A stretch of 64,000 nucleotides of DNA from the IMG/VR virus record IMGVR_UViG_3300027668_000008, positions 186,001 through 250,000 of that record. The stretch is one strand, 5' to 3'. Within the stretch, counting starts at the first letter, position 1. Every line of letters starts with the position of its first letter. The notes under the pieces were generated by a model, which saw nothing but the letters and a program-made list of their open reading frames with translations, was not told where the DNA came from and did not search any database. This document shows, piece by piece, positions 22,344 to 51,124 of this stretch. A program made the position numbers and the translations under genes.

Positions 22344-22351
22344 TATAAATA
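22344..22351 (+). promoter_or_regulatory. Late promoter TATAAATA for gp14-gp15
   Basis: Exact consensus followed by a GAGG RBS. Confidence 0.75.
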
Positions 22352-23568: not shown

Positions 23569-24969
23569 ATGGCAAGACAGTTTTTTTATGACAATCAGAT
23601 TAGAAGATTCTTACTACAATTTGTAAGATTGTTTAGTAATTTTCAAGTAGAAGTTGGTGCTAAGAATGCCAGTGGTGACAGAGACTTGCTTACAATTCCA
23701 GTAACATACGGCGACATGAGTCGTAACGTTGCCCAAGTAATGAGAGATGCAAGTGAGAACAAAGTATTAAGTGCTCCTCGAATGACTACGCATATACAAA
23801 GTATGACATATAGTAGAGAACGTGTACAAGAGCCTAACTTTGTAGATAAGTTACACGTTAGACAACGAAAATTTAATGACAGTACAAAGACATACAGTCG
23901 TACTCAAGGTAATGCTGTAACTGTTGAAAGACATATGCCTGTTCCTTATGACCTAAGATTAAACTTAGATATTTGGACTACTAACACTGAAATGAAATTA
24001 CAAGTATTAGAACAAATTTTATGTTTGTTTAATCCGAGTTTAGAAATACAAAGTACAGACAACTACGTCGACTGGACTAGTTTAAGTTTAGTACAATTAG
24101 AAAACGTAAACTTTAGTAGTAGAAGTATTCCTGTTGGAACCGAAGACCAAATAGATATTGCAACATTAGAATTTAGTATGCCTATTTGGTTAAGTATGCC
24201 TGCTAATGTTAAGAAGATGGGTGTTATACACAAAATTATTAATAGTGTCTATGATGGAAGTGGAGACTTAGTAAATTCAGTTAGTGATGACAATTTAGTT
24301 ATGGGAACAAGACGTGCTGTTACACCAGGTAATTATGGTGCTGTACTTTTAAATGGTCAAGCAGAACTTGTTGACACAAACGCAGAAAGTACTCGTGACA
24401 CTTTAGATACTACTGTAATTCTTACTGAAAATTTAACAAAACCAAGTTGGAGAGCAGTCTTAGAACAATACGGGCCTATTAATCCAGGTATAACACAGAT
24501 ACGTTTTATACAAGACAATGACGCTGAGGTTGTAGGAACCATTGCATATCACCCAGCAGACCCTCATATCCTCCTTGTAACGGTAGATAGTGACACGATC
24601 CCGGTTAATACACTAACAGCAATTAATTCAATCATACGCCCATCTAAAGCGACAGCGACAAGTGTAGTTAAAACGACAGGTAATCGTTATTTAATTTTAG
24701 AAGATATTGGAAAAACAACATCACCGGCACAAGTAGACGGTCCAGATTTTTGGAAAAGCAATGCAGGTGTAGACTTTGTTGCTAACACAAATGATATTAT
24801 TAAATGGGACGGGGAGAAATGGGTTATAGATTTTGACGCTAGTGCAACCGAAACATTAAGTTATGTTACTAATGCTACAACTGGTATCCAATACAAATGG
24901 ACTGGTACACAATGGCTTAAAAGTTATGAAGGGGAGTATGCTCCTAAAAACTGGAGAGTTGTTATCTAA
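23569..24969 (+). CDS. gp15: Tail sheath stabiliser / terminator with C-terminal extension
   Basis: FFYDNQIRR, PVPYDL and QVLEQILCLFNP motifs. Confidence 0.88.
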   Translation: MARQFFYDNQIRRFLLQFVRLFSNFQVEVGAKNASGDRDLLTIPVTYGDMSRNVAQVMRDASENKVLSAPRMTTHIQSMTYSRERVQEPNFVDKLHVRQRKFNDSTKTYSRTQGNAVTVERHMPVPYDLRLNLDIWTTNTEMKLQVLEQILCLFNPSLEIQSTDNYVDWTSLSLVQLENVNFSSRSIPVGTEDQIDIATLEFSMPIWLSMPANVKKMGVIHKIINSVYDGSGDLVNSVSDDNLVMGTRRAVTPGNYGAVLLNGQAELVDTNAESTRDTLDTTVILTENLTKPSWRAVLEQYGPINPGITQIRFIQDNDAEVVGTIAYHPADPHILLVTVDSDTIPVNTLTAINSIIRPSKATATSVVKTTGNRYLILEDIGKTTSPAQVDGPDFWKSNAGVDFVANTNDIIKWDGEKWVIDFDASATETLSYVTNATTGIQYKWTGTQWLKSYEGEYAPKNWRVVI

Positions 24970-25736
24970 TCGTTCCACTTGTACTTTAACTGAACGCCTA
25001 TATCCATATCACTAATAAAAGTTCTGTAGTCTAAATACTTTACGTTTTTACACCACTTCCAATCGTCTGGAAATGTGTAAGCAGGATTATCATTTACCCA
25101 GTGAAAATTAACATCTTTGTAAGAATCAAATATAACTTTCATGTGTGCAATCCATTTCGCATCTGATGACGGTTCTGTTGATGATGGATAATTTTCTGTA
25201 TCCGCATATACATTATTTGTTAATTCAGGATCTCTTTGATTATCGAACCCAATCAAATATACTTCCTTATGCTTGTCAAAACAAGCCAAATATGTTGCGA
25301 TTGTTCCCGAGTTATAGTAACTAATATTTTGTGGAATTAAATGAAACTTACCCGGGTATTTTACAACATTCTTAGCAGTTGTATATACAATATTATTTTC
25401 ACCAAAGCCTGAGTTGGCTATTTCTTTTGTCATATTATCTAACATAGTGACAGTGAAATCTGGTTTCATATCTCTATATATAGCATTACACCCGTAAGTT
25501 TGACAACGTTTGTTTGCTAACAAGCCTCCACTATGATTTTCAATATACTCTAAGGAAAATTGTTTTCGTACTCTGCTATTACCGTTACCAATTACAACTG
25601 CATAACCACGATGGTCATCATTCATAATCGTTCTGGGTATCCACTCTCGGTCTTCTGTTCTAACACCGTCGGTTAAACTAACATTGTGTATGACAAATTC
25701 GCCTTCGTAGTCGTCTGAGTAAAATGGAAGTTTCAT
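24966..25736 (-). CDS. Maf/DUF115-like (sialyltransferase-like Rossmann) protein
   Basis: VIGNGNSR, YGCNAIYRD.KPD and VYLIGFD motifs. Confidence 0.55.
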   Translation of the reverse strand: MKLPFYSDDYEGEFVIHNVSLTDGVRTEDREWIPRTIMNDDHRGYAVVIGNGNSRVRKQFSLEYIENHSGGLLANKRCQTYGCNAIYRDMKPDFTVTMLDNMTKEIANSGFGENNIVYTTAKNVVKYPGKFHLIPQNISYYNSGTIATYLACFDKHKEVYLIGFDNQRDPELTNNVYADTENYPSSTEPSSDAKWIAHMKVIFDSYKDVNFHWVNDNPAYTFPDDWKWCKNVKYLDYRTFISDMDIGVQLKYKWND

Positions 25737-25763
25737 ATGTTGTTACCTTTATATTAGTAATAT

Positions 25764-26801
25764 TTATATGAAAAGCATTGCTCCGGCAGTTAGTATAACC
25801 AAACTACCCCAAAGCCCGAGTATGGTAGCATAATAACGCAATTTGGTACCAAAGTAAAGCATTCCTATTGCCACGCACTTGTGCATTGGACTAATCAAAT
25901 ATCCTACAAAGTCTACTGCAAAGAACCACGGCAAATATTCTATACCATATATAGTTGCCATAATAACTGTTAATGCACCAAAACGTGAACTACTTCCTAA
26001 TGCAAATGCACCGGCAAAACTAGCCAAACTTAACATAGTAAACCCCCAAAGAGTGTTAATGTCAAGTCCACTTGTTTCTAAAAATGTTTTAATTTGTTCT
26101 GTATTTTCTCTAGCAATATTTGCCGCAATAATGATAAGTGCGACCCAGCCAATTAGTCTAAAATCAACATAGCCTAATAACTTCTTGATGTTAAAAGTCT
26201 TTGTTACAAGTATGTAATAAGCAGTTAAAGATCCAAATACCCACATAAAGTCTAGTCCGGCAATAATACCGCCCACACCTGCAACGTAGGGAAAAACATA
26301 TCTAGTTATTCTACTAACTTTAATTTCTGTTCCGCAGTCACCAATTTCAATATCACTTTCTTTTACACCCCATACCAAGTATGAAATAATAAAAATAAGA
26401 GATACTGCTAACAAGGGCCACATCATTCCCATAAATTGTCCGTATGAGATACCAAACGCCGCCATTGGTAAAATAACTGTTTTCTCTAACGGTGACCAGA
26501 AATAATAATGGTGTGTACTTACATAATCAATAGGACCAAACTTATCTCTACCACAACACCCTTTGTCGGGTGCCATAGTTTCGAGCATTCCTGCACTCAC
26601 TGTAACCCTTCCTTTAATAGGAAGTATGCCTGTTAATGCACTCACTATTGCTACAACAGATTTTTTACTTTTTAAATTTTGTTCAAAGAAACAAAACAGA
26701 TCCTTAAATAATCCATTTTCTTTTACCATACCTGCAATCATCATTACAAATACGATTAAAAATAAATATATTTGACCCTTTAATATTAAGTCAATAATCA
26801 A
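25764..26801 (-). CDS. Polytopic membrane permease (ion-transporter-superfamily-like)
   Basis: About 9-10 hydrophobic segments with WSPLEK and ISPMHKC motifs. Confidence 0.7.
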   Translation of the reverse strand: MIIDLILKGQIYLFLIVFVMMIAGMVKENGLFKDLFCFFEQNLKSKKSVVAIVSALTGILPIKGRVTVSAGMLETMAPDKGCCGRDKFGPIDYVSTHHYYFWSPLEKTVILPMAAFGISYGQFMGMMWPLLAVSLIFIISYLVWGVKESDIEIGDCGTEIKVSRITRYVFPYVAGVGGIIAGLDFMWVFGSLTAYYILVTKTFNIKKLLGYVDFRLIGWVALIIIAANIARENTEQIKTFLETSGLDINTLWGFTMLSLASFAGAFALGSSSRFGALTVIMATIYGIEYLPWFFAVDFVGYLISPMHKCVAIGMLYFGTKLRYYATILGLWGSLVILTAGAMLFI

Positions 26802-27589
26802 TTATTGTTTCCTTTTTGTATCGAAATCTTTAGTTGTTCCGTAAGTTCTGAAGAGTTACCCAACTGTGCTTGTTGATTACTGTTATGTACTATTTGTGCA
26901 GTCCTACGTTCATTGTGTACAAACACATCACTTGCAAGTTCTATTGCTTTAGTTTGGTCTTCATATGTTAACATTGTTAAACTGTCCATGTTTCCAACAC
27001 CTACTTTCCCGTATGCAATCATATCCATAGCCGATTGTTTACCTAAACGTTTAACCCAATAATCTCGTTCAGCCGCTTCTATTTTCTCTGGGTGATCAAA
27101 AATATCAATTAACTTTGATCCATCTTCCAATATGCCATATTCGCTTTCAGATAATTCCTGTATCAAATTTAAATACATTAAACGTTCTTCTCTATGACCT
27201 CTAAGTAATCTTACAAATCCATCACGTTTTGCTTCTGCATAATTTATTTCAATTTGTGCTCTACGTTTTACAAATTCATCATCAGTTTTTTCAATATCGT
27301 GTTTCCACTCATCGATTGTTAATTCAATTTTTGCAAGTTCGTATTCTTGTGAGGTAATAGAATGTTCTCTACCTTGTATTTCCATAAGGTACTGTTTCAT
27401 TGCACCATACGGAGTAATACCAGCCTGTCCAATAAAATGCCTCATTTTAAATTCTGGCATAACAAAGTTTCTGCTTATACTATATCCTACTATATCTGCT
27501 TGTTCTGTTGTTAACTCATCTATGTCAGATTTTAAGTCTTTACCTGTTACTTGCATAGATGATTTTAAACTATCAAACGTTTTGCCCAT
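26798..27589 (-). CDS. Hypothetical coiled-coil protein
   Basis: Helical 263-aa ORF overlapping the permease start. Confidence 0.6.
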   Translation of the reverse strand: MGKTFDSLKSSMQVTGKDLKSDIDELTTEQADIVGYSISRNFVMPEFKMRHFIGQAGITPYGAMKQYLMEIQGREHSITSQEYELAKIELTIDEWKHDIEKTDDEFVKRRAQIEINYAEAKRDGFVRLLRGHREERLMYLNLIQELSESEYGILEDGSKLIDIFDHPEKIEAAERDYWVKRLGKQSAMDMIAYGKVGVGNMDSLTMLTYEDQTKAIELASDVFVHNERRTAQIVHNSNQQAQLGNSSELTEQLKISIQKGNNN

Positions 27590-27594
27590 ATGTG

Positions 27595-28200
27595 TTATCC
27601 TCCAATATATCTAGGTGTTTGAAACCGTATATTAAATGCAACATTTATTCGTTGCATATTACTTTTATTTGTTTCTGTTTCATGTGGCATCCAAGCGGGC
27701 CACAAAATTAATTGTCCATTTGTAGGAGATATACTATATCTACTAGTAAACGGTGCGTGGGGGTGACAACTTTCTGTTAAGTTCATCGGATTGTGCCAAA
27801 CAATATCACCTGTGTCTTTTCCTTGTAAGTAGTAAACTGCTACATAATGATGAAGTCTGTGATCATGTAAGGCATTTTTACTGTCTGGTTCATTTATATT
27901 TGTCCAGTATCCAATATCTGGTGCACCGTAATTTCTAAGTTTTTCATTATACAATGGGTCGGCTTCTGCATATGTTTCTATTGCACTATTACATAACAAG
28001 CGAAGTTCTTCTACTAACCATTGTATATCTGGATAGTTGAATTCGTGTCTCCAGCAACCTCTGTTACTAAAGTTTAATTGCTTTTCATCTGTTTGTTTTT
28101 TTATGTTTTGTGCATATTCAATCATAGAGTTACGTTGTGATTCTGATCCAACATCATCTTTTACGAAAACATCTGCTTGTAATATTTTAAATTTGTTCAT
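27595..28200 (-). CDS. 2OG-Fe(II) oxygenase (phage type)
   Basis: WTNIN, HDH, VYYL, WPAWMPH and RINVAFN motifs. Confidence 0.85.
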   Translation of the reverse strand: MNKFKILQADVFVKDDVGSESQRNSMIEYAQNIKKQTDEKQLNFSNRGCWRHEFNYPDIQWLVEELRLLCNSAIETYAEADPLYNEKLRNYGAPDIGYWTNINEPDSKNALHDHRLHHYVAVYYLQGKDTGDIVWHNPMNLTESCHPHAPFTSRYSISPTNGQLILWPAWMPHETETNKSNMQRINVAFNIRFQTPRYIGG

Positions 28201-29812
28201 TTCTTTTTACTACCATTACATATAAACCGTTCCACCATTTAGTTTTATCTTCTATATTATTAAGAATTAACTTTTCAAATTCTATTTTATAATTTGTGTT
28301 TAATATTCCTTGTTTACTACCATTAACAACTCCTTGCCAATTAGCATCATCGAATATTAATATGGCTTCATCTGCCCAATACTTACTATAATGTTCAACT
28401 GCTTTTGCCGTTAGTTCTTGGTCATGTGGACCATCATAGAAAAACAAATCGTACCCGTTGTCTTCTAATTTAACATTAAGCATATCGTCGTTATAAACTT
28501 TTAAATTTTTATAACTACTTGTATTGTTGTCAAACTGTTTCTTATTATTAGTTGGTAGTTTAAATTCTCCGCTTTCGGGATTGATATTTTCATTCCAATT
28601 ATCAACACAAGTTACTGGAATATTTGTATCTAAAACACTAATAGCGGTAGAGCCCATAGCACTACCTACTTCTAAATACATTATACTATCTTTTCCCAAT
28701 TGATGCAAGAGTTTTTTTACTCGTTCACTAGTTAATCCTTGTATGTTATTAGTATAGTCGTTGTTTTCATGCGATACTAGTGCTTGTACTAATGTTATTG
28801 CCTTGCTATTATTGACTTTTCCAGACTTACTTTCATAAACTTTATCGCAAAAATTACAATCCCAACAATCAAATTTACAAGTCTTAATTATTTTTCGCCA
28901 AGCATTTATTGGCTTGTCTTTTAAATTAGTATCATCAAGATATTGTTCGAATCCACTAACTAATATTTCCTTCTTGTTATGGTAATTTTCAACTATTTTT
29001 AGAGTTTCATAGAAACGTTTTATATTTTCTCTGCCATGCATTTTAAATACATCAACATACTTTGCTAGTTCTACCCAGTCTTCTCTCCATGGAGGAAAGT
29101 TTGCTTTCTTTAGATCTGAACTAGGGTCAGTAATATCCCATTTGGAACAACTTACTCTGCTGATAGGATCATTAAAATATTGAGGATTATCACCAACTCT
29201 GGTATTATTAAATTGAAAATGTTCTTCCATCATAGCACAACCTCCGGCACAACCTTCATTTGCTAATAAAGAAATTTTCATATCATACTTGTCCGCGGCT
29301 TTTCGTATACGAGCAAGACTATCGTGATCTCGCATTAAATCTCTATGCAAGTTTACATAATGAAATCCGTGTTTACCTAATTCAGCAACATCTTTAGCCG
29401 TTTGTACTTGTCTAAGAATTGTATTTTTTATTAAAAGTTTAGGAAACTTTTTCTGTATTTGTCCAGTTGCTACCCAATGTGTGTGAGGTATAGTTGCACT
29501 ATGTACTCCTGCATTATATAACTGATCGAAGTTATGTATCCACGTATCTAAATTGTCTTGCGAAGGTCTAACTTCAATATTATTAAATGTTGCACTTATA
29601 GGTATGCCTGTTGCTTCTTGTATTTTAAGTGCTACTGATATTAATTCATTTGTGTCAGAAGCAAACACATCACCCATAGCATCTTGCTCAAAAGGAGGCA
29701 TTCTACAAGTAAAGTAAATATCGTAAATCACTTCTCGATGATTAATACAAAAATCTACAAAATGTTGTAACTGGGTATTATTTAACTTTGGGTTAAGCGG
29801 TATACTGAACAT
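28187..29812 (-). CDS. U32-family Fe-S protein fused to a class I SAM methyltransferase
   Basis: N-terminal half: RDLMRD, LANEGCAGGC, VFKMHGRE, CKFDCWDCNFC. C-terminal half: YLEVGSAMGS, CVDNW, FFYDGPH, IFDD. Confidence 0.8.
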   Translation of the reverse strand: MFSIPLNPKLNNTQLQHFVDFCINHREVIYDIYFTCRMPPFEQDAMGDVFASDTNELISVALKIQEATGIPISATFNNIEVRPSQDNLDTWIHNFDQLYNAGVHSATIPHTHWVATGQIQKKFPKLLIKNTILRQVQTAKDVAELGKHGFHYVNLHRDLMRDHDSLARIRKAADKYDMKISLLANEGCAGGCAMMEEHFQFNNTRVGDNPQYFNDPISRVSCSKWDITDPSSDLKKANFPPWREDWVELAKYVDVFKMHGRENIKRFYETLKIVENYHNKKEILVSGFEQYLDDTNLKDKPINAWRKIIKTCKFDCWDCNFCDKVYESKSGKVNNSKAITLVQALVSHENNDYTNNIQGLTSERVKKLLHQLGKDSIMYLEVGSAMGSTAISVLDTNIPVTCVDNWNENINPESGEFKLPTNNKKQFDNNTSSYKNLKVYNDDMLNVKLEDNGYDLFFYDGPHDQELTAKAVEHYSKYWADEAILIFDDANWQGVVNGSKQGILNTNYKIEFEKLILNNIEDKTKWWNGLYVMVVKRNEQI

Positions 29813-29818
29813 TGAGCC

Positions 29819-30544
29819 TTACACATTAAGTTGTGCGGCAGTCGTCGTTCCTGTACTTGTTTGTAATGCTACTGGCATTGTCATTTCGAATCTTTGATGC
29901 ATTAATACAAAACAGGCGCTGATGTCTGCACAATTTTTGATTTCCGTTTCTACGACTTGTTTACTTGCTAGTAAAGTTCTAACTTTTCCATCGTGATTAT
30001 TGATTGCTTGTCCTATTAGCCTTGCCATGTCTGCTTTTTCGATTCCTCTACTTGTTGCTAGTGCGTCAAGTAACGGAACAGTGGCTGAATTATTTTTATT
30101 ATACTTGATATAATCTGATTTTTGCTTATCCCAAGTACTACTTTCTAATACACTAACATTAATATTTAGTGCTTGTAATCTATGGTCATAAATTTCATCT
30201 AATTGTTTACGCATAACTGCTTTCATAAAAGCAGTACAATTTGTAACGTCATCAGTTGTTAATGTATATTTTTCTTTTTCGCCTGTGGGTTCTGAACTTT
30301 CGTGTAACCCCATTTGTTCATCTTCAAGTGTACCCGGTCTAATGCTTACATGACCTTTCCAGCCTTGTGTTAGTAACCATGCTTTTGCAACGGCGTCTGT
30401 CAATATCGTTGGCTCTAAATGTAAATAAGGTATGATGTCTTTGTGTGTATCAGGTATAAATCCTACACAGTAATTTAAATATCTGCCATATATTTTTACA
30501 GGACCTAATTCTTTTTGTGTTTTCATTTTAAATAAAATATACAT
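29819..30544 (-). CDS. Putative tail fibre assembly / chaperone-like protein
   Basis: ESSTWDKQ...PLLDALATSRGI motif of fibre-associated proteins; follows the fibre gene; start set at ATG 30544. Confidence 0.55.
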   Translation of the reverse strand: MYILFKMKTQKELGPVKIYGRYLNYCVGFIPDTHKDIIPYLHLEPTILTDAVAKAWLLTQGWKGHVSIRPGTLEDEQMGLHESSEPTGEKEKYTLTTDDVTNCTAFMKAVMRKQLDEIYDHRLQALNINVSVLESSTWDKQKSDYIKYNKNNSATVPLLDALATSRGIEKADMARLIGQAINNHDGKVRTLLASKQVVETEIKNCADISACFVLMHQRFEMTMPVALQTSTGTTTAAQLNV

Positions 30545-30546
30545 AA

Positions 30547-32415
30547 TTATGCTCTCCAAACACAGTGTCCTGAGCTTCCGCCTGCTACGCCTGTTCTTAC
30601 TGATCCAGAACCTAGTTCAGTTCCTGAGTTAGTTGCATATGTCCACTTCCAACCTCTGTTGTTCTGTGAACCATCATAATTACCCATACTATACTGATGT
30701 GCTTGTCCCATATCTAAATTTTCTTCCCCACAGTTTGTAATTGGTTTAGTAACTGTTGTTGTAACTGTTTCCGATGAGTAACTCCATACTCTTACATTAT
30801 TACCACCATTGTAACTTCCTTCGTTGCCAGCATAACCATAACCTAGTTTGTCTGCCCAACCTTTTTGCTGACTGTTAATACCCGGTTTATTAGTTGGTGT
30901 TGTCATTGTAACTTGTGTGCCTGTTGACCAAACAAATTTTCTACAATCATTTACATCTTGCCAAACATAACCATAATTTTCACCACTGTGACTTGCACAA
31001 CCTGACTGCATAGCATCACCACTTAATGAATCCTGTCCTTGGTCAGAATACATAGTTCCGTTTGCTAAATTCATAACATCTACGTTTGCATTACCACCGC
31101 CTACAATCCAAGCCTTTTCGTGTTCTTTAAATAGTGTAGCACAATCGTTTCTTCCCCATTGCAGATTTGGTCCATTACCGCCAGTGTAGGTTGACATATG
31201 GAAATTTGTTGTTGCCGCACTAGTACCTGGCCAAGTGTCATCTGCACTCCAAAGATACCCATGTGTTAGTGTACATACACCGGAAGTATATGCCGCGGCA
31301 TAGGTCAGTACATCACCATTATTAGTCATAACGTCAGTTGCATGAACCATTGTGTTTACGTTTTTCCACGGACTTGAACTTTGGTAACCGCCCATAACAA
31401 ATCCAGTTGTAATAACTTGTCTTGTTAAGAAAGGTTGTGCTCCGCTACTTCCAGCGGCTTCGACCCAATCACTGCCATCATATAACATTAATTTTTTTGT
31501 ACCACTGTTATAGTAAACTTGTCCTGCCGCTAAATTACTTGACGGATCACTCGACAATGATTTAAAATCAACCGGTCCACCAAATTGCGGTGTTGTATCT
31601 TCAATAATATTAGATATACCTGCTGACTGAATAGAACTAATAGAAGTAAATCCAAAGTTACCACTTCCATCTGTTTTTAAAACCATGTTTGCAGATCCAT
31701 CACTAATACTTAAATCAGTTAATGCAGTTGGTATAGTGGGTTTGTTAGATAAATCATTATAACTAATTGTAACACCAGTTAAATTACTTGTATTTGTTTG
31801 TATTGCGTTACCCATGTATGCATGATTTTCGCATTGGTAATGAAGTACAGGTGGCGTATCATCTGTGATTGTAATTTCTGTATAGGCTCCGGCTTGACCG
31901 GCTGTTCCATTTTGTGTTACGTTTGTTGTATATGCAGAAGTTTTATCTGCTTTTAAGAAAAATCTAATTGCGTGAGTATTATTACTACTATGTGAAGTAT
32001 CAAATCTATATGCTCTTCCAGGAGTAAACACAAAATATGGTGCTTGAATTCCGTCCATAAAGTATCCTTTAGACGATCCTGTACCGTTGTATCTGTGTGT
32101 TGCAGTTTTGTCTAAAGATTGTACTATAATATCAATTCTACTTCCAAAAGGTCTTGCGTGTGATCCTGCGTCAACATATGCTTTAATAGATTGTTGTGTG
32201 GCTAAATGCTCGTCCGAATCAGATGTCATAGCATCTTCGTCTTTAACAGCACTACCTGAAACAGATGTATCTAATTGTGCATTTGTTAAAATTGGGGAAG
32301 AATTTGCTGTATTTAATTGTTGCCATACAGAGTCTGTACTGTTGTAAACAAAACTTACTCCACCTACAACTACTACTGTCCCGTTTGATGGACTTGCTGG
32401 AAATGTTGCCGCCAT
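30547..32415 (-). CDS. Virion fibre/adhesin with cupredoxin-like and beta-propeller-like domains
   Basis: FPASPSNG start, LATQQSIKAYVD and LHYQCENHAYMG motifs, repeated GFVMGG/GYAG blades. Confidence 0.7.
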   Translation of the reverse strand: MAATFPASPSNGTVVVVGGVSFVYNSTDSVWQQLNTANSSPILTNAQLDTSVSGSAVKDEDAMTSDSDEHLATQQSIKAYVDAGSHARPFGSRIDIIVQSLDKTATHRYNGTGSSKGYFMDGIQAPYFVFTPGRAYRFDTSHSSNNTHAIRFFLKADKTSAYTTNVTQNGTAGQAGAYTEITITDDTPPVLHYQCENHAYMGNAIQTNTSNLTGVTISYNDLSNKPTIPTALTDLSISDGSANMVLKTDGSGNFGFTSISSIQSAGISNIIEDTTPQFGGPVDFKSLSSDPSSNLAAGQVYYNSGTKKLMLYDGSDWVEAAGSSGAQPFLTRQVITTGFVMGGYQSSSPWKNVNTMVHATDVMTNNGDVLTYAAAYTSGVCTLTHGYLWSADDTWPGTSAATTNFHMSTYTGGNGPNLQWGRNDCATLFKEHEKAWIVGGGNANVDVMNLANGTMYSDQGQDSLSGDAMQSGCASHSGENYGYVWQDVNDCRKFVWSTGTQVTMTTPTNKPGINSQQKGWADKLGYGYAGNEGSYNGGNNVRVWSYSSETVTTTVTKPITNCGEENLDMGQAHQYSMGNYDGSQNNRGWKWTYATNSGTELGSGSVRTGVAGGSSGHCVWRA

Positions 32416-32418
32416 AAT

Positions 32419-34020
32419 TTAACTCCTCTTTAACAGTACTTCTACTGTATCTTGTTCATCGACTTTGTTATTTAACGCCAAACCGATAATACAGCCTGGT
32501 TGATAATTGCCACTAAATTTTGTTGCATATCCTTTAATTTCGCTAGATGTTAACATATCACCCTTTTCAATGTGTCCAACTACTTTAATTGGAACTCGTC
32601 CTACAAAACCTACACAAACTGGATGTTCTGCATCTATATCTTTATTCATTAAGTAAGCAGGTTTATCAGAAACAACGCCTGCTATTTGTGAACTAGCATA
32701 TTTGCCACACTCTGTAACTTCGTGTGTTCCGCCTACTATAACCACTGTGCCTACTTCATAATCTTTATCACCTGCATACATCTCTGCCAAGTCAGCATAC
32801 TGTGCCGATGATGCTTTACCTGAAAATGCTACTGCGTGAATCTCTTTAAACTGTTTTGCAGAAGAACCTAAATCTCTAGTATTATCTCCATCTGGTAAAA
32901 TAACACCTGTTACCGCAACTGTTCCATCTAACATTGGACCACTTTGTCCAGGTGACCACTCTACCCATTGTTTAGTAGTACCGTCATTAATGTATTTGTA
33001 AAAGTTACCATTATCAGTATCGTACCATTCGTCGCCGTCTGCTGGACTACTTGGTGCTCCAGAACTTGCAACATACGTTGTTGCACTTCCGCCTGTGCCG
33101 TTAACCCATGCACTACCGTTGTATTTTAATACTTGGTCTGTTTGCAGACTTGATATTGTTACATCTGCTAGTGTACCTAAATTTGAACTTGTTAAATCTG
33201 CTAGTGCACCAATACCTGCCGCTGTTGGTGGAGAGTATGTAAACACACCTGTACTATTGTTGTATGCAATAGAACCGTCACCACTTGCACTTCCTTCTGC
33301 ACCGACTGATAAATCTGTTAATGCAATTCCGCCTGCATCTGCGGCATTTACCCAAGCACTACCATTGTATTTTAATACTTGTCCGTTACTTACACTTGAT
33401 ATTGTTACGCCTGTTAGTTCGTTTAATTCGTTTACTTCAGCAGTATTAACCCAAGCACTTCCGTTGTATTTTAAAATTTGTCCTGTACTTGCACCAGATA
33501 GTGTTACGTCTGTTAATTCTCCAATTTCATTTGTTGAAGCAATTAATCCATCGACATAGGCTTTATTTGCCGCATCTGTATTTGCAGTAGGTGTTCCTAA
33601 TTCAGTTAGTTTAATACCATTTAAATCTATTGTTGTGTTACTATCGATTTTAATATTACTATTTGTAAATCTTACATCTTCATTTTTAAATCTTACTTTT
33701 TTATCAAATACGTTATCAAAATCATCATCATCACTATCATAATCAGATATAGAACTTGCAACCATAGTTTTAGTTGCTAGTACAGAAATATTTCTTTCAA
33801 TATCTTCTAATCTTCTTAAGTCTGATTTTGATCCACCAAATACAATATCGTCATCTTGTATATCACCTTCAGCAAAAGATTCAATATCACCATTCTTTTT
33901 ATAACGCCAAAGTTTCGAATCAACTGATGCTCCACTTAATTCTGCTGATTTTAATGAATGTAGATCCTCGAAAGATCTCATCTGTCCATTAATTTTTATT
34001 TTTCTTCCGCCTCTAGCCAT
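32419..34020 (-). CDS. Tail fibre protein with C-terminal autocleaving chaperone-like domain
   Basis: Three (G/D)Q(I/V)LKYNGSAWVN repeats; SAQYADLAEMY...GRVPIKV. Confidence 0.75.
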   Translation of the reverse strand: MARGGRKIKINGQMRSFEDLHSLKSAELSGASVDSKLWRYKKNGDIESFAEGDIQDDDIVFGGSKSDLRRLEDIERNISVLATKTMVASSISDYDSDDDDFDNVFDKKVRFKNEDVRFTNSNIKIDSNTTIDLNGIKLTELGTPTANTDAANKAYVDGLIASTNEIGELTDVTLSGASTGQILKYNGSAWVNTAEVNELNELTGVTISSVSNGQVLKYNGSAWVNAADAGGIALTDLSVGAEGSASGDGSIAYNNSTGVFTYSPPTAAGIGALADLTSSNLGTLADVTISSLQTDQVLKYNGSAWVNGTGGSATTYVASSGAPSSPADGDEWYDTDNGNFYKYINDGTTKQWVEWSPGQSGPMLDGTVAVTGVILPDGDNTRDLGSSAKQFKEIHAVAFSGKASSAQYADLAEMYAGDKDYEVGTVVIVGGTHEVTECGKYASSQIAGVVSDKPAYLMNKDIDAEHPVCVGFVGRVPIKVVGHIEKGDMLTSSEIKGYATKFSGNYQPGCIIGLALNNKVDEQDTVEVLLKRS

Positions 34021-38100: not shown

Positions 38101-38982
38101 TGTTACATTACCTGTTACATTACCTGCTACGTTACCAGTTACGTTACCAGTAATATTACCTGCAAAGTTAGTACTTGCTGTAATTACAGTACCAGTTACT
38201 GCCGCTGGAGTAGTTCCACCAATAATACCATCAACTGCACCTGTGTGTGCACCTGCTGAATTACCAGTTAAGTTACCTGCTACGTCACCAGTTACATCAC
38301 CTGTAATATCACCTGCAAAATTTGTGTTTGCAGTAATAACAGTACCAGTTACTGCCGCCGGTGTATTACCACCAACAACACCATCTTGTGTTCCTGTTAC
38401 ATTACCAGTTAAGTTACCTGCTACGTTACCAGTTACGTTACCTGTTAGTGCGCCTGCAAAATTTGTGTTTGCAGTAATAACAGTACCAGTTACTGCCGCA
38501 GGAGTATTACCACCTACAACACCATCTTGTGTTCCTGTTACATTACCTACTACGTTACCAGTTACGTTACCTGTTAAGGCACCTGTTGCTGTTCCAAATC
38601 TTATGTCACCATAAGATGCAATAGTTACGTTACCTGCAGTTGTTCCTGCATCTGTTGTAAGCATCATTGCGAATTGGTCTTCGCTTTCGTCCCAAATCAT
38701 TGCCGCATTGTTACCAGCACCGCCTCTGTTAATGATAATACCACCATCAACGTTTCCTGCGCCACCTGATCCCAATAGCATAAATGGATCTGCCACGGTC
38801 GTGTTTGTTGTATCAACAGTAGTGGTTGAACCATTTACTGTTAAATTACCTGTTACAGTCAGATTACTGCCATAGGTTAAGTTTGCTTCCAATTTACCGG
38901 CTGTTACGTTAACGTCTGCAATTTTTGCAGTTGTTACCGCGGAGTCGGTTATCTGATTGGTTTTAATACGAGTTACGGCCAT
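35119..38982 (-). CDS. Long tail fibre protein with G/T/N-rich repeats and C-terminal chaperone-like domain
   Basis: 1287 aa; TGNV repeats, APGALDTLNELAAALGDD and SAQYADLAEMY motifs. Confidence 0.85.
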   Translation of the reverse strand: MAVTRIKTNQITDSAVTTAKIADVNVTAGKLEANLTYGSNLTVTGNLTVNGSTTTVDTTNTTVADPFMLLGSGGAGNVDGGIIINRGGAGNNAAMIWDESEDQFAMMLTTDAGTTAGNVTIASYGDIRFGTATGALTGNVTGNVVGNVTGTQDGVVGGNTPAAVTGTVITANTNFAGALTGNVTGNVAGNLTGNVTGTQDGVVGGNTPAAVTGTVITANTNFAGDITGDVTGDVAGNLTGNSAGAHTGAVDGIIGGTTPAAVTGTVITASTNFAGNITGNVTGNVAGNVTGNVTGTQDGVVGGNTPAAGTFTTITAGGTIDAGSNQVTNVTDPTANQHAATKAYVDSQLSGAANAINQLNSDVTVTDSGSNGLITFNIDGASEGTINSDGLTMGNINIDANTIKTTSGNLTIDPNPGGSGGTVTIEGSLTVTGTTTTVDSTVVTIADPVFQVGADSNDNLDRGITYLHNDGSAKKGYFGLDTSATEFVFIADATDTSSVFSGDLGAAAFGSMRVADLTNTRVTFSGANGELSDAASLTFNSGTGALSATSFVGALTGNVTGNSAGAHTGAVDGVVGGNTPAAVTGTVITANTNFVGDITGDVTGDVAGNLTGNSAGVHTGAVSGDVTSTGTSTFATVDVNGGAIDGAIIGANTAAAITGTTVNGTVITASTNFAGNITGNVTGNVAGNVTGTQDGVVGGNTPAAVTGTVITANTNFAGNITGDLTGDSAGAHTGAVDGVLGGNTPAAATVTTITASGNSTNAGTLSVGGTSTVAGSSLVVDSTDSVRLPVGTTAQRPASPSIGQYRFNSTSGTLEVYTGGEWNSGADFTTIAADAFNGDASTVAFTLSVTGTTATTIVSLNGVVQIPTTAYAVSGTTLTFTEAPATGDVIDARVLTTTSTIVGIADQDGDTQIQVEEGTDDDTIRFDAAGTEMFTINSSGIAGASGARITAILDEDAMGSDSATALATQQSIKAYVTSQIATKDNTDEMTEGSTNLYFTNARADARAQAKIDSLVDSAPGALDTLNELAAALGDDANFSGTVTSSLATKMPLAGGTFTGDVIAENLTISGSYTLTLGGILNANSQRLTSVATPTASSDAATKGYVDGGLAGLSQDSISEGDSKIEVTDSGTGTAVVTLDNAAHTTFNSSGITLSTGVFSGTATSAQYADLAEMYSADADIEPGTVVCFGGEHEVTTCMQDADKKIAGVVSTNPAYLMNSDADGVAVALQGRVPCKVTGAVAKGDMLVAAGNGMARAEENPAMGTVIGKALENHAEGEGVIEVVVGRM
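36720..38590 (-). repeat. Two clusters of imperfect intragenic repeats
   Basis: About 8 copies of DGVVGGNTPAAVTGTVITANTNFAG, separated by 12-nt TGNV/AGNV units. Confidence 0.85.
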
Positions 38983-39119
38983 AAGTGAATCACTCCTCTT
39001 TATTTTATGTCGTTATAAGTCTGGTCGGACCAATAGTATTTATAGGATTCACGTATTTTTTATATGCTTGTATATGGTTTAAAGGTAAATTAAATTAAAT
39101 AATTTAATTAAAGTAGCAC

Positions 39120-45968: not shown

Positions 45969-46052
45969 TTTATTTCTCCTTGATACGTTTTATGTACTAC
46001 GAGGATGGCTCCCCATAAACTCACATTAGTGTGAGCAATACTATTTATATGT

Positions 46053-50560: not shown

Positions 50561-51124
50561 TTATTTATTAAAAAATATATTAAATGATAAACTAACCCTT
50601 GTATCATGAGATTCGTTCCGCATTATACCATGTTTTAAGTATCCGGGGAATAAAAGCAGTTTACCTACAACAGGTTTATGTTGCCAAGAACCCGTTGTTA
50701 CACAAGTAGACATAGCCACTTGTACTGTAGGATTCTCGAAAACTATGTTCCCGTCTTTTTGATTTGTTTGAAAATAATATACGCCTGATATGTCTGCGTT
50801 ACCGTGGTCATGAACATGACCATAATCGTTATGTTCAAATAACGATATCCATGATTCCATTCGATAGTCATTGCTATGTGTATAGCCTAACTGCTCTGAA
50901 AACTCATTTAAATTCTCATTTAAAAATAAGTTAAAGTTAGTTAAGTTATAGTTCTTTATTATATCGTCTGAGAGTTTAGATATTTTATGGGTCTTACCCC
51001 AATCTAGATTGTATTCTGTACCAGTGTCTTGTACAACAATACCAATTTCGTGTTGTATGTTTTTTAAATTTTCGTCTTTAGCAAAACTGCACCATAAAGG
51101 TGTAGGGAAGATATTTTCTATCAT
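50561..51124 (-). CDS. 2OG-Fe(II) oxygenase (phage type)
   Basis: IFPTP, HDH, ISGVYY, LFPGYLKH and RVSLSFN motifs. Confidence 0.88.
   Translation of the reverse strand: MIENIFPTPLWCSFAKDENLKNIQHEIGIVVQDTGTEYNLDWGKTHKISKLSDDIIKNYNLTNFNLFLNENLNEFSEQLGYTHSNDYRMESWISLFEHNDYGHVHDHGNADISGVYYFQTNQKDGNIVFENPTVQVAMSTCVTTGSWQHKPVVGKLLLFPGYLKHGIMRNESHDTRVSLSFNIFFNK

Follow-up and report, generated by a model that had tools for sequence, protein, structure and literature searches.

A conserved phage gene set linking a Kelch-like fibre-tip protein to a divergent U32-like enzyme, here fused to a methyltransferase

The region considered here lies on a 64,000-nt stretch of a marine jumbo phage (IMG/VR record IMGVR_UViG_3300027668_000008, positions 186,001 to 250,000; hereafter the window), and consists of six tightly packed genes on the minus strand between positions 25764 and 32415. 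In the order of transcription, the open reading frames (ORFs) are located at 30547-32415 (622 aa), 29819-30559 (246 aa), 28187-29812 (541 aa), 27595-28200 (201 aa), 26798-27589 (263 aa) and 25764-26801 (345 aa), and the successive junctions, as computed from these coordinates, are a 13-nt overlap (or a 2-nt gap if the ATG at 30544 is used as the start of the second gene), a 6-nt gap, a 14-nt overlap, a 5-nt gap and a 4-nt overlap. They encode a fibre protein, a protein resembling tail-fibre assembly factors, a fusion of a U32-like domain with a class-I methyltransferase, a 2OG-Fe(II) oxygenase, a coiled-coil protein and a polytopic membrane protein, respectively. A preliminary description of this DNA had reported just such a fibre-linked cassette, and this observation is confirmed by our analysis.

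The N-terminal part of the 622-aa fibre protein (30547..32415) is shaft-like, with residues 87-225 matching the tail-fibre family phrog_30742 (6.5e-50), while residues 316-619 match phrog_1417. This C-terminal portion of ~320 aa (about 30550-31470; named fibC here) is predicted to form a six-bladed Kelch-like β-propeller, which is presumed to be the distal tip. The AlphaFold model has a pLDDT of 88.5 and a pTM of 0.85, and Foldseek matched it with TM scores of 0.70-0.74 to the Kelch domains of Keap1/KLHL proteins and to phage Kelch-like proteins including one of Ralstonia phage RP12, although there is no Pfam Kelch repeat match by sequence. In relatives, fibC is usually a free-standing protein of ~355 aa, present in 1-3 tandem copies. 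The second gene product, p246 (29819..30559; phrog_1604), is a helical protein that may resemble tail-fibre assembly (Tfa/TAP) proteins, but this assignment is supported only as a lead: clusters of look-alikes in the Atlas carry HI1402_helical, Caudo_TAP and XkdW, and a bacterial orthologue has a weak PF27318 hit on record. Its true start is likely the ATG at 30544, as the Atlas record begins at residue 6. Orthologues of p246 lie next to the U32 gene in cyanophages and in a Leptospirales operon (see below). The 2OG-Fe(II) oxygenase (27595..28200) was identified by PF13759 (5e-14), TIGR02466 (2.5e-11) and phrog_81. The 263-aa protein (26798..27589; phrog_1409), referred to as cc263, contains a central coiled coil and a conserved C-terminal helical motif, and belongs to no known family; we found no Pfam, PDB or named relatives, and the only weak PDB matches, at residues 60-145, are coiled coils. 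The last gene (25764..26801), with an alternative start ~19 codons in, encodes a membrane protein that matches DUF401 (2e-7) and TIGR00529 (4.6e-11 over residues 12-329), and is a 'permease' like the ion-transporter superfamily; its orthologue in Ralstonia jumbo phage RP31 matches DUF401 over its whole length (3.2e-10) and CitMHS (2.7e-6).

The N-terminal half of the 541-aa fusion protein (28823..29812, residues 1 to ~330) is a very divergent U32-type barrel. Pfam does not detect U32 on this protein even at E<=10, but several other lines of evidence do. The AlphaFold model shows eight alternating strand/helix units, and the Atlas structure has a TM score of 0.76 to a PF01136 cluster. A profile built from 79 family representatives scored E. 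coli TrhP at 25.9 bits and RlhA at 20.0 bits, with co-linear alignments over barrel strands 3-7, in which the K-x-x-G-R motif is aligned to K-I-E-G-R in TrhP, RlhA and UbiU; furthermore, hhalign gave a P of about 1e-6. In addition, P0270, a protein in an archaeal context, is hit by the phage-family profile at 3e-18, itself carries PF01136, and shares all the cysteine motifs of the family. Two such motifs are prominent. The first is E-G-C-x3-C after barrel strand 7 (C188-x3-C192, at 29237..29251), which together with C222 (29147-29149) is invariant or nearly invariant in the 79 representatives. The second is C-x3-C-x2-C-x2-C (C312, C316, C319 and C322, at 28847..28879), which closes the U32-like domain, provides the only four fully invariant columns across the 79 diverse representatives, and is a probable second metal or Fe-S site. 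However, the cysteine loops are the low-confidence parts of the model, and the canonical four-cysteine motif of U32 proteins is not conserved as such. As U32 proteins were first described as collagenases, it is conceivable that the domain acts as a 'collagenase-type' peptidase of the old MEROPS assignment, or as a redox-inactive assembly factor, that processes or folds the fibre tip, in accordance with its position next to a Tfa-like protein and fibre genes in every lineage. We consider such a non-hydroxylase role quite unlikely, since the seven conserved cysteines in two motifs are typical of metal or Fe-S sites, U32 proteins are currently treated as Fe-S hydroxylases (PMC10990095), and the fusion to a SAM methyltransferase argues for small-group chemistry.

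The C-terminal half of the fusion (28187..28750, residues ~355-541) is a class-I SAM methyltransferase domain, which matches PF13578 (3.6e-7, above the gathering score) and is COMT/TrmR-like by COG naming, JGI having named its relatives 'predicted O-methyltransferase YrrM'. Foldseek matched it with a probability of 1.00 to class-I methyltransferases including TrmR (5zw3), whereas no sequence match to any solved methyltransferase, TrmR included, was detectable.

To see whether these genes belong together, we examined 80 related IMG/VR loci, in which the fusion is flanked by cc263 in 76, by the Kelch protein in 70, by the permease in 52, by p246 in 48 and by the 2OG oxygenase, directly downstream of the fusion, in 43. 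The four loci without cc263 have under 800 nt of upstream sequence. Gene order differs between lineages, but the genes stay clustered. Moreover, among 50,697 phage genomes the U32 domain and cc263 each occur in 126 records with the same organism split, a match that was read from counts per organism rather than record by record, and the propeller occurs in 123; in contrast, the permease is found in only 12, and S-CAM4 keeps its permease homologue 58 kb away from the U32 gene. As synteny in T4-like structural modules is partly inherited, adjacency alone is weak evidence. Nevertheless, the same operon of propeller, coiled-coil protein, chaperone-like protein, U32 and DUF401 genes sits in a 6.44-Mb Leptospirales contig, flanked by non-phage genes, and hence the module is not restricted to phages. 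A cc263-U32-permease set also occurs, without the methyltransferase, in RP31, and such a set is found on an unrelated GC-rich contig as well. RP12 has a 292-aa Kelch-like protein, the same length as ORF139 of RP31, which lies two genes upstream of cc263 and weakly matches the Kelch profile (2e-5). An independent phage lineage couples a U32-like gene to 3-4 glycine-rich fibre-tip proteins and a flavin halogenase-like gene, and one member adds four 2OG oxygenases and a ferritin; in our view this would again be aromatic-ring tailoring next to fibre tips. The core members are therefore the propeller, cc263 and the U32 protein, while the methyltransferase, the 2OG oxygenase and the permease are lineage add-ons.

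The preliminary description had proposed a polypeptide that hydroxylates and then methylates its substrate, paired with an O2-dependent hydroxylase and a permease, and co-expressed with a receptor-binding fibre. This interpretation is supported in part. The two conditions on which it had been made to depend, namely that the N-terminal half is a U32 barrel and that the genes co-occur in other phages, both held, and the coupling of hydroxylation to O-methylation has real precedents in the yrrM-yrrN-yrrO operon and in TrhO-TrmR fusions (PMC6599085). On the other hand, the obligate partners of the U32 gene are cc263, the Kelch-like fibre tip and the chaperone-like protein rather than the 2OG oxygenase or the permease, the methyltransferase fusion is lineage-specific, being absent in Ralstonia phages and in the bacterial operon, and the pairing of O2-dependent and O2-independent hydroxylases remains an inference.

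The best-scoring characterised relatives of the U32 domain being TrhP and RlhA (the 23S rRNA ho5C2501 synthase), the fusion might be a phage analogue of TrhP-TrmR that makes ho5U and then mo5U (or ho5C) in host or phage RNA to help decode an AT-rich genome, its place among fibre genes being incidental. The naming of the methyltransferase and its structural match to TrmR, the trmR-trhP2-trhP1 operon of B. subtilis, in which a U32-type enzyme is likewise coupled to a COMT-like O-methyltransferase (PMC6599085), and the repurposing by phages of CmoA from the same pathway (PMC12783734) are in favour of this possibility. However, the phage protein lacks the Peptidase_U32_C motif and domain of TrhP and the additional domains of the 653-aa RlhA, and it differs from TrhP/TrmR in its cysteine pattern (E-G-C-x3-C, S-C and the C-terminal C-x3-C-x2-C-x2-C), in a methyltransferase that matches PF13578 instead of PF01596, and in its linkage to fibre rather than translation genes. 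It also co-occurs strictly with cc263 and the Kelch protein, including in a bacterial operon and in distant jumbo phages, the bacterial and Ralstonia versions lack the methyltransferase, and there are no tRNA genes in the window; an RNA target thus seems unlikely to us. Even less likely is the modification of phage DNA by 5-hydroxylation and O-methylation of pyrimidines. Characterised U32 enzymes do act in hydroxylation at C5 of pyrimidines in RNA, and phages have re-used the xo5U machinery for DNA (PMC12783734), but the gene lies in the putative late structural operon instead of with replication or nucleotide-metabolism genes, it co-occurs with fibre proteins and also in a bacterial operon, and a weak PHROG match to a 'DNA methyltransferase' (4.3e-7) covers only the generic SAM fold.

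The transporter-like membrane protein, on the other hand, might point to a small-molecule pathway, in which it would move an aromatic or anionic metabolite (or a metal-citrate complex), the U32, methyltransferase and 2OG enzymes would tailor this compound into a quinone-, catechol- or sugar-type product, and the propeller might bind the product. UbiU/UbiV with UbiG, of the O2-independent ubiquinone pathway, in which ring hydroxylation is followed by O-methylation, are a precedent for a hydroxylase and an O-methyltransferase acting on a lipid; like the phage domain, UbiU and UbiV are minimal U32 barrels of about 300-330 aa, and these two proteins need accessory proteins, carry Fe-S clusters and use prephenate as the oxygen donor (PMC10990095). 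In addition, one divergent family member sits in a sugar/radical-SAM/glycosyltransferase cluster, which points to non-protein substrates for at least some members, one relative has a ferritin nearby, and a strongly conserved patch in the last blades of the propeller would be unusual for a variable receptor-binding face. However, the transporter is missing from about 90% of the isolate genomes that carry the U32 gene (12 against 126), there is only one U32 gene rather than a heterodimer pair and no SCP2/UbiT-like partner, no significant direct similarity to the Ubi proteins was found, the hosts include cyanobacteria, which make no ubiquinone, and no other biosynthetic genes are conserved with the module. 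Hence, we regard this possibility as unlikely as well.

A T4-type late-promoter-like motif, TATAAATA, is located at 39037..39044 on the minus strand, 55 nt upstream of a 1287-aa fibre gene that heads the run of minus-strand genes down to 25764. A second TATAAATA at 25761..25768 on the same strand overlaps the stop of the membrane-protein gene, lies 25 nt upstream of the next gene (24966-25736), and marks the probable 3' limit of the transcription unit. The motif is not enriched overall, but four of its five copies lie 20-75 nt upstream of start codons in the right orientation.

Taken together, our preferred though still tentative explanation is that the region is one copy of a conserved, horizontally mobile fibre-tip accessory module, which would be transcribed late together with the tail-fibre genes. 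In this view, its core would be formed by four proteins, i.e. the Kelch-like propeller, here fused to a fibre shaft, cc263, the Tfa-like p246 and a divergent U32-family Fe-S enzyme, often joined by the DUF401 protein, while in this marine lineage the enzyme is fused to the methyltransferase and followed by the 2OG oxygenase. The U32 domain, holding one or more Fe-S clusters on its conserved cysteines, would perform an O2-independent, prephenate-type hydroxylation of an aromatic (sp2) carbon, the fused methyltransferase would O-methylate the new hydroxyl, and the 2OG oxygenase would add a further O2-dependent oxidation. The target would most likely be a component of the fibre-tip assembly itself, either a side chain of the propeller or of cc263, or a ligand bound to them, and the tailoring would tune fibre maturation or receptor binding. 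While the gene content, the folds (from models and profiles), the U32 homology and the co-occurrence rest directly on our analyses, the binding of Fe-S clusters, the catalytic activity and its chemistry, the substrate and the late operon are inferred. Characterised U32 members act in hydroxylation of aromatic or pyrimidine rings, and most of the 12 U32 subfamilies are uncharacterised (PMC10990095), but no U32 enzyme is known to act on a protein, and a membrane protein with 10 TM segments has no obvious role in modifying a cytoplasmic fibre protein. These results suggest that some phages chemically tailor their host-recognition apparatus, by a system that has not been described.

Tail-fibre assembly chaperones (Caudo_TAP/Tfa, T4 gp57A/gp38) are comparable in that a small helical protein and a coiled-coil protein are encoded beside the fibre tip that they presumably serve, but no known fibre-chaperone set includes an Fe-S enzyme, a methyltransferase, an oxygenase or a polytopic membrane protein. 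As to the predicted propeller, no U32 or cc263 partners were reported in jumbo phage CBB, but one of the Kelch-like proteins of jumbo phages (e.g. CBB_552) is an MS-verified component of the CBB virion (PMC5259590), and the capsid protein encoded in the window is likewise closest to those of jumbo phages.

The 64-kb window is the late structural module of a T4-like myovirus, which holds a gp23-type capsid protein, a portal, a sheath, a tape-measure-like protein and several fibres. An IMG/VR contig of 306,714 bp matches the U32-like domain of the fusion gene at 100% identity, and all eleven cassette and neighbouring gene queries are also 100% identical on it. The capsid protein is 59-65% identical to those of jumbo phages, namely PA5oct, Sinorhizobium Phosso, Vibrio 2.275.O and Escherichia phages of about 350 kb. 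The DNA runs that hold the stretch are marine metagenomes, and no phage in GenBank is close to it at the DNA level.

The preliminary description of six tightly packed genes holds: the six ORFs are located where it placed them, all on the minus strand, and their junctions range from a 14-nt overlap to a 6-nt gap. The 622-aa protein contains a fibre-shaft segment (phrog_30742, 6.5e-50) and a C-terminal phrog_1417 domain. The 541-aa fusion protein matches Methyltransf_24 (PF13578) at residues 380-489 with 31.5 bits, above the Pfam cut-off of 26.3. The 201-aa protein is a 2OG-Fe(II) oxygenase matching PF13759 (5e-14; 52.9 bits against a cut-off of 27), although it falls below the cut-off of the TIGR02466 subfamily (43.8 against 62.5). 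A second paralogue of this oxygenase (187 aa; 50561-51124, minus strand) lies next to the portal gene and matches the profile of the cassette's oxygenase at 4.9e-21; 2OG oxygenases are therefore multi-copy in this phage, which weakens any specific pairing with the U32 gene. The 345-aa putative permease matches DUF401 (PF04165, 31.1 bits against a cut-off of 24) and has several strongly hydrophobic segments, in keeping with a polytopic membrane protein; TIGR00529 aligns over residues 12-329, but far below the equivalog cut-off, and the orthologue in Ralstonia phage RP31 matches DUF401 over its full length and also matches CitMHS.

As for transcription, a TATAAATA motif (39037-39044, minus strand) lies 55 nt upstream of the 1287-aa fibre gene at 38982, and another (25761-25768, minus strand) overlaps the stop of the membrane-protein gene, 25 nt ahead of the next gene. 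We infer that the cassette probably ends a long late transcript that starts with fibre genes. Together with copies at 22344-22351 (plus strand) and 46042-46049 (minus strand), four of the five TATAAATA motifs in the window lie 20-75 nt upstream of start codons in the right orientation, which fits T4-type late promoters, although the motif is not enriched overall (5 found, 8.7 expected). A scan for sigma-70 promoters and terminators was at chance level. Short contigs from marine RNA libraries cover parts of five of the six genes at low depth, but as DNA carry-over cannot be excluded, this is only weak evidence, and not proof, of expression. The gene just downstream of the cassette (24966-25736, minus strand), preceded by its own late-promoter-like motif, encodes a 256-aa protein (phrog_30607) without a Pfam or NCBIfam match; its G-N-G-N-S ... 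G-F-D motifs, taken alone, are reminiscent of DUF115/Maf-type glycosyltransferases, and it accompanies the cassette in only 3 of 80 related loci. The 533-aa fibre protein upstream (32419-34020, minus strand) shows weak matches to intramolecular-chaperone/Peptidase_G2-type C-terminal domains (0.0053) and to several fibre PHROGs, and is probably a self-cleaving fibre.

The preliminary description had made its proposal depend on whether the N-terminal half of the fusion protein is a U32 barrel and whether the genes co-occur in other phages, and both points were examined. The Pfam model (PF01136) gives no U32 hit on the N-terminal half, even at E<=10; hhalign of a shallow 20-sequence profile against single UbiU and UbiV, and phmmer searches of UbiU/UbiV against the family, were also negative, and a deeper profile was needed. 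Searches of the fusion, the methyltransferase domain and cc263 against PDB sequences with phmmer and profiles returned nothing meaningful, a search with UbiU as query found no solved U32 structure, and a Foldseek search with the whole fusion was dominated by generic methyltransferases and TIM barrels. Four independent lines of evidence nevertheless agree. First, the AlphaFold model shows eight alternating strand/helix units over residues 1-260, as expected of a TIM-barrel-like fold, and the ESM Atlas model of this very sequence superposes on a cluster that is 99% PF01136 at TM 0.76, and on YhbU-like clusters at 0.63. Second, an exhaustive profile search found 510 family representatives, and a profile built from 79 of them scores E. 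coli TrhP at 25.9 bits and RlhA at 20.0 bits; the alignment is co-linear from barrel strand 3 to the first cysteine, and in three separate alignments it places the F-K-x-x-G-R motif of the family (F-K-M-H-G-R-E, with K257, G260 and R261 nearly invariant) on the K-I-E-G-R strand motif of TrhP, RlhA and UbiU. Third, hhalign against the four E. coli paralogues gives P about 1e-6. Fourth, P0270, a protein from an archaeal-looking neighbourhood (RIO1 kinase, KH/PNO1-like protein), is hit full-length by the phage profile at 3e-18, carries PF01136 in its own right, and shares every cysteine motif of the family.

We therefore conclude that the domain belongs to a divergent U32 subfamily, which differs from the characterised members in three ways. 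The canonical four-cysteine [4Fe-4S] motif of UbiU/UbiV-type proteins is not conserved, as only the equivalent of its second cysteine aligns; instead, the family has E-G-C-x3-C (C188, C192), a later S-C (C222), and an invariant terminal C-x3-C-x2-C-x2-C (C312, C316, C319, C322). Cluster binding is plausible, but would use a different ligand set. Furthermore, there is no Peptidase_U32_C domain of the TrhP type, as no PF16325 hit was found in the window protein or in 79 relatives, and the barrel is followed directly by the cysteine motif and the methyltransferase. Finally, only one U32 gene is present: no second hit to the family HMM was found in the window, and no SCP2 family appears among the neighbours, in contrast to the UbiU/UbiV system with its two U32 paralogues plus an SCP2 protein (UbiT). 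In the deposited genomes of cyanophages S-CAM4 and S-RIM2 (loci L001 7001-7139 and L002 7001-7139, respectively), the fusion gene is annotated about 46 codons too short, as the tblastn match to the conserved N-terminus of the window protein begins 138 nt upstream of the annotated start.

The C-terminal half of the fusion is a class-I SAM methyltransferase with a Rossmann-type SAM fold and motif I, in which E-x-G-x-x-x-G is invariant, and Foldseek gives a probability of 1.00 to many class-I methyltransferases. The automatic JGI name for relatives is 'O-methyltransferase YrrM', and TrmR ranks 9-11 among many equally good structural hits, but there is no PF01596 hit and no sequence match to any solved methyltransferase; its Y-D-G-P-H and D-D-A-N-W motifs may resemble the metal-ligand motifs. 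An O-methyltransferase role is therefore likely, though it remains a prediction. A role in tRNA or rRNA modification has good chemical precedent; however, it does not explain the genetic partners or the missing RNA-binding domains, and we consider it unlikely. Isoelectric points do not discriminate an RNA-binding role.

The C-terminal domain of the fibre models confidently (pLDDT 88.5) as a Kelch-type propeller with six four-stranded blades, with TM 0.70-0.74 (query-normalised) and about 0.8 (target-normalised) to Keap1/KLHL domains, although no Pfam Kelch repeat is detected by sequence. Its nearest viral look-alikes include a 292-aa protein of Ralstonia phage RP12 and Kelch-like proteins of jumbo phages, one of which is an MS-verified virion component of phage CBB (PMC5259590). 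In most relatives this domain is a free-standing protein of about 355 aa, present in one to three tandem copies, with two or three tandem paralogues in the related loci L024 (3057-6491), L031 (4231-6490) and L055 (4651-6728); only in the window, which has one copy, and in a few others is it fused to a shaft. The protein p246 resembles tail-fibre assembly proteins (Caudo_TAP/HI1402_helical) by language-model features only, without a Pfam hit at E<=0.01; a weak precomputed PF27318 hit on its bacterial orthologue was not reproduced at E<=0.1. The 263-aa protein, cc263, has no Pfam, NCBIfam or named relative, and the only weak PDB matches of its central stretch are coiled coils.

The co-occurrence of these genes is the strongest result. 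In 80 related IMG/VR loci the fusion gene is accompanied by cc263 in 76, the four exceptions having under 800 nt of upstream sequence, while the Kelch protein is present in 70, the permease in 52, p246 in 48 and the 2OG oxygenase in 43. The usual order is Kelch, cc263, p246, fusion, 2OG, a 241-aa gene and permease, and in the window cc263 has moved to the place of the 241-aa gene; thus the order changes, but the cluster persists. Among 50,697 phage genomes the U32 domain is found in 126 records (77 Synechococcus, 38 'Cyanophage', 8 Prochlorococcus and 3 Ralstonia), and cc263 is found in 126 with exactly the same split, as judged from counts per organism; the Kelch domain is found in 123, p246 in about 115 cyanophage records, and the permease in only 12. 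As 381 Synechococcus-phage and 61 'Cyanophage' records match in the capsid search, the module is accessory rather than universal. In S-CAM4 the DUF401 homologue (NC_031900.1 159580-160548) lies about 58 kb from the U32 gene, so the membrane protein is not always physically linked to the module.

The module is also found outside the cyanophages. Ralstonia jumbo phage RP31 has a Kelch-like ORF139, ORF138, cc263, a U32 gene without a methyltransferase, and the permease. A 6.44-Mb contig of a Leptospirales MAG (60% GC), the only genome returned by a genome scan with one protein, carries an operon with overlapping genes that holds a 1511-aa DUF6519/DUF2341/Laminin_G_3 protein ending in the same Kelch domain, followed by cc263, p246, U32 (no methyltransferase) and DUF401, and its flanking genes encode patatin, a guanylate cyclase and other non-phage proteins. 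A 2-kb GC-rich contig again shows cc263, U32 and permease. A second, distant branch of the U32-like family (about 430 aa) sits in other T4-like phages, where it follows three or four glycine-rich (Gly_rich_2) small fibre-type proteins, a conserved flavin-dependent halogenase-like gene (L087 5794-7437; L103-L109) containing the G-x-G-x-x-G and W-x-W-x-I-P motifs, and a 170-aa protein; in one member, L087, four tandem 2OG oxygenase paralogues and a ferritin follow.

These results suggest that the unit under selection is the set of Kelch tip, cc263, p246-type putative chaperone and U32 enzyme, whereas the methyltransferase, the 2OG oxygenase and the DUF401 protein are modular additions. Every characterised U32 enzyme acts in hydroxylation of an aromatic or pyrimidine ring carbon; for UbiU-V prephenate is the oxygen donor, and the same chemistry is proposed for the whole family (PMC10990095). 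In the tRNA and quinone pathways that hydroxyl is then alkylated (PMC6599085), and the fusion therefore most plausibly hydroxylates and then O-methylates. As the genetic partners of the enzyme are fibre-tip components across phage lineages and in a bacterium, and the sister lineage pairs it with another aromatic-ring tailoring enzyme, we tentatively favour a target within the fibre-tip assembly. In this account the gene content, the U32 homology and the co-occurrence rest directly on the analysis and the folds on predicted models, while Fe-S binding, prephenate-dependent hydroxylation, methylation, transport, the substrate and the late transcript are inferred. The interpretation in the preliminary description, in which one polypeptide hydroxylates and then methylates and is paired with an O2-dependent hydroxylase and a permease beside a fibre, is supported in part only. 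A processing role other than hydroxylation is improbable, and DNA modification is a remote possibility. It is also conceivable, though we regard it as unlikely, that this is the first U32-family enzyme with a protein (or protein-bound) substrate; phages, and a bacterial fibre-like operon, would then enzymatically install hydroxy or methoxy groups (halogens in a sister lineage) on aromatic residues of their Kelch-like or glycine-rich fibre-tip proteins, creating chemically tailored receptor-binding surfaces or a protein-derived cofactor by an oxygen-independent route in oxygenic hosts.

U32 proteins are a large family, most of whose twelve subfamilies have no known function, and they are reported as almost exclusively bacterial and archaeal (PMC10990095). 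Here a whole viral subfamily appears, with thousands of metagenomic members, which occurs in 123 cultured cyanomyovirus records plus three Ralstonia jumbo-phage records, and is bound genetically to the host-recognition apparatus; S-RIM2, S-CAM4 and RP12/RP31 are in culture. No paper in the literature searched links U32 proteins to phages or fibres, searches on DUF401 and on U32 with cyanophages gave nothing relevant, and GenBank and PHROGs list all the partners as hypothetical; the family itself is known, but the genetic system in which this divergent enzyme is found is undescribed. If the enzyme tailors the fibre tip, this would add covalent chemistry (hydroxylation, O-methylation, perhaps halogenation) to the ways phages diversify or stabilise receptor binding, and would give U32 enzymes a new substrate class. 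If it instead acts on tRNA or a metabolite, it is a widespread, unrecognised auxiliary gene of marine phages.

A small-molecule pathway served by the putative transporter would explain the DUF401 protein as well as one divergent relative, but the transporter is absent from most carriers, and we likewise consider this reading unlikely. In that relative, on an AT-rich contig of 109 kb (L095 3214-15035), a U32-like gene is embedded among four radical-SAM genes, split transketolase-like genes, a glycosyltransferase, epimerases/dehydratases, a PIG-L deacetylase and a UDP-glucose dehydrogenase, which may be a glycan-modifying use of the family. In another locus (L091 1205-1513), a 544-aa family member with a ~190-aa N-terminal extension sits directly after a small Rieske [2Fe-2S] protein, which could be an electron partner for this enzyme family.
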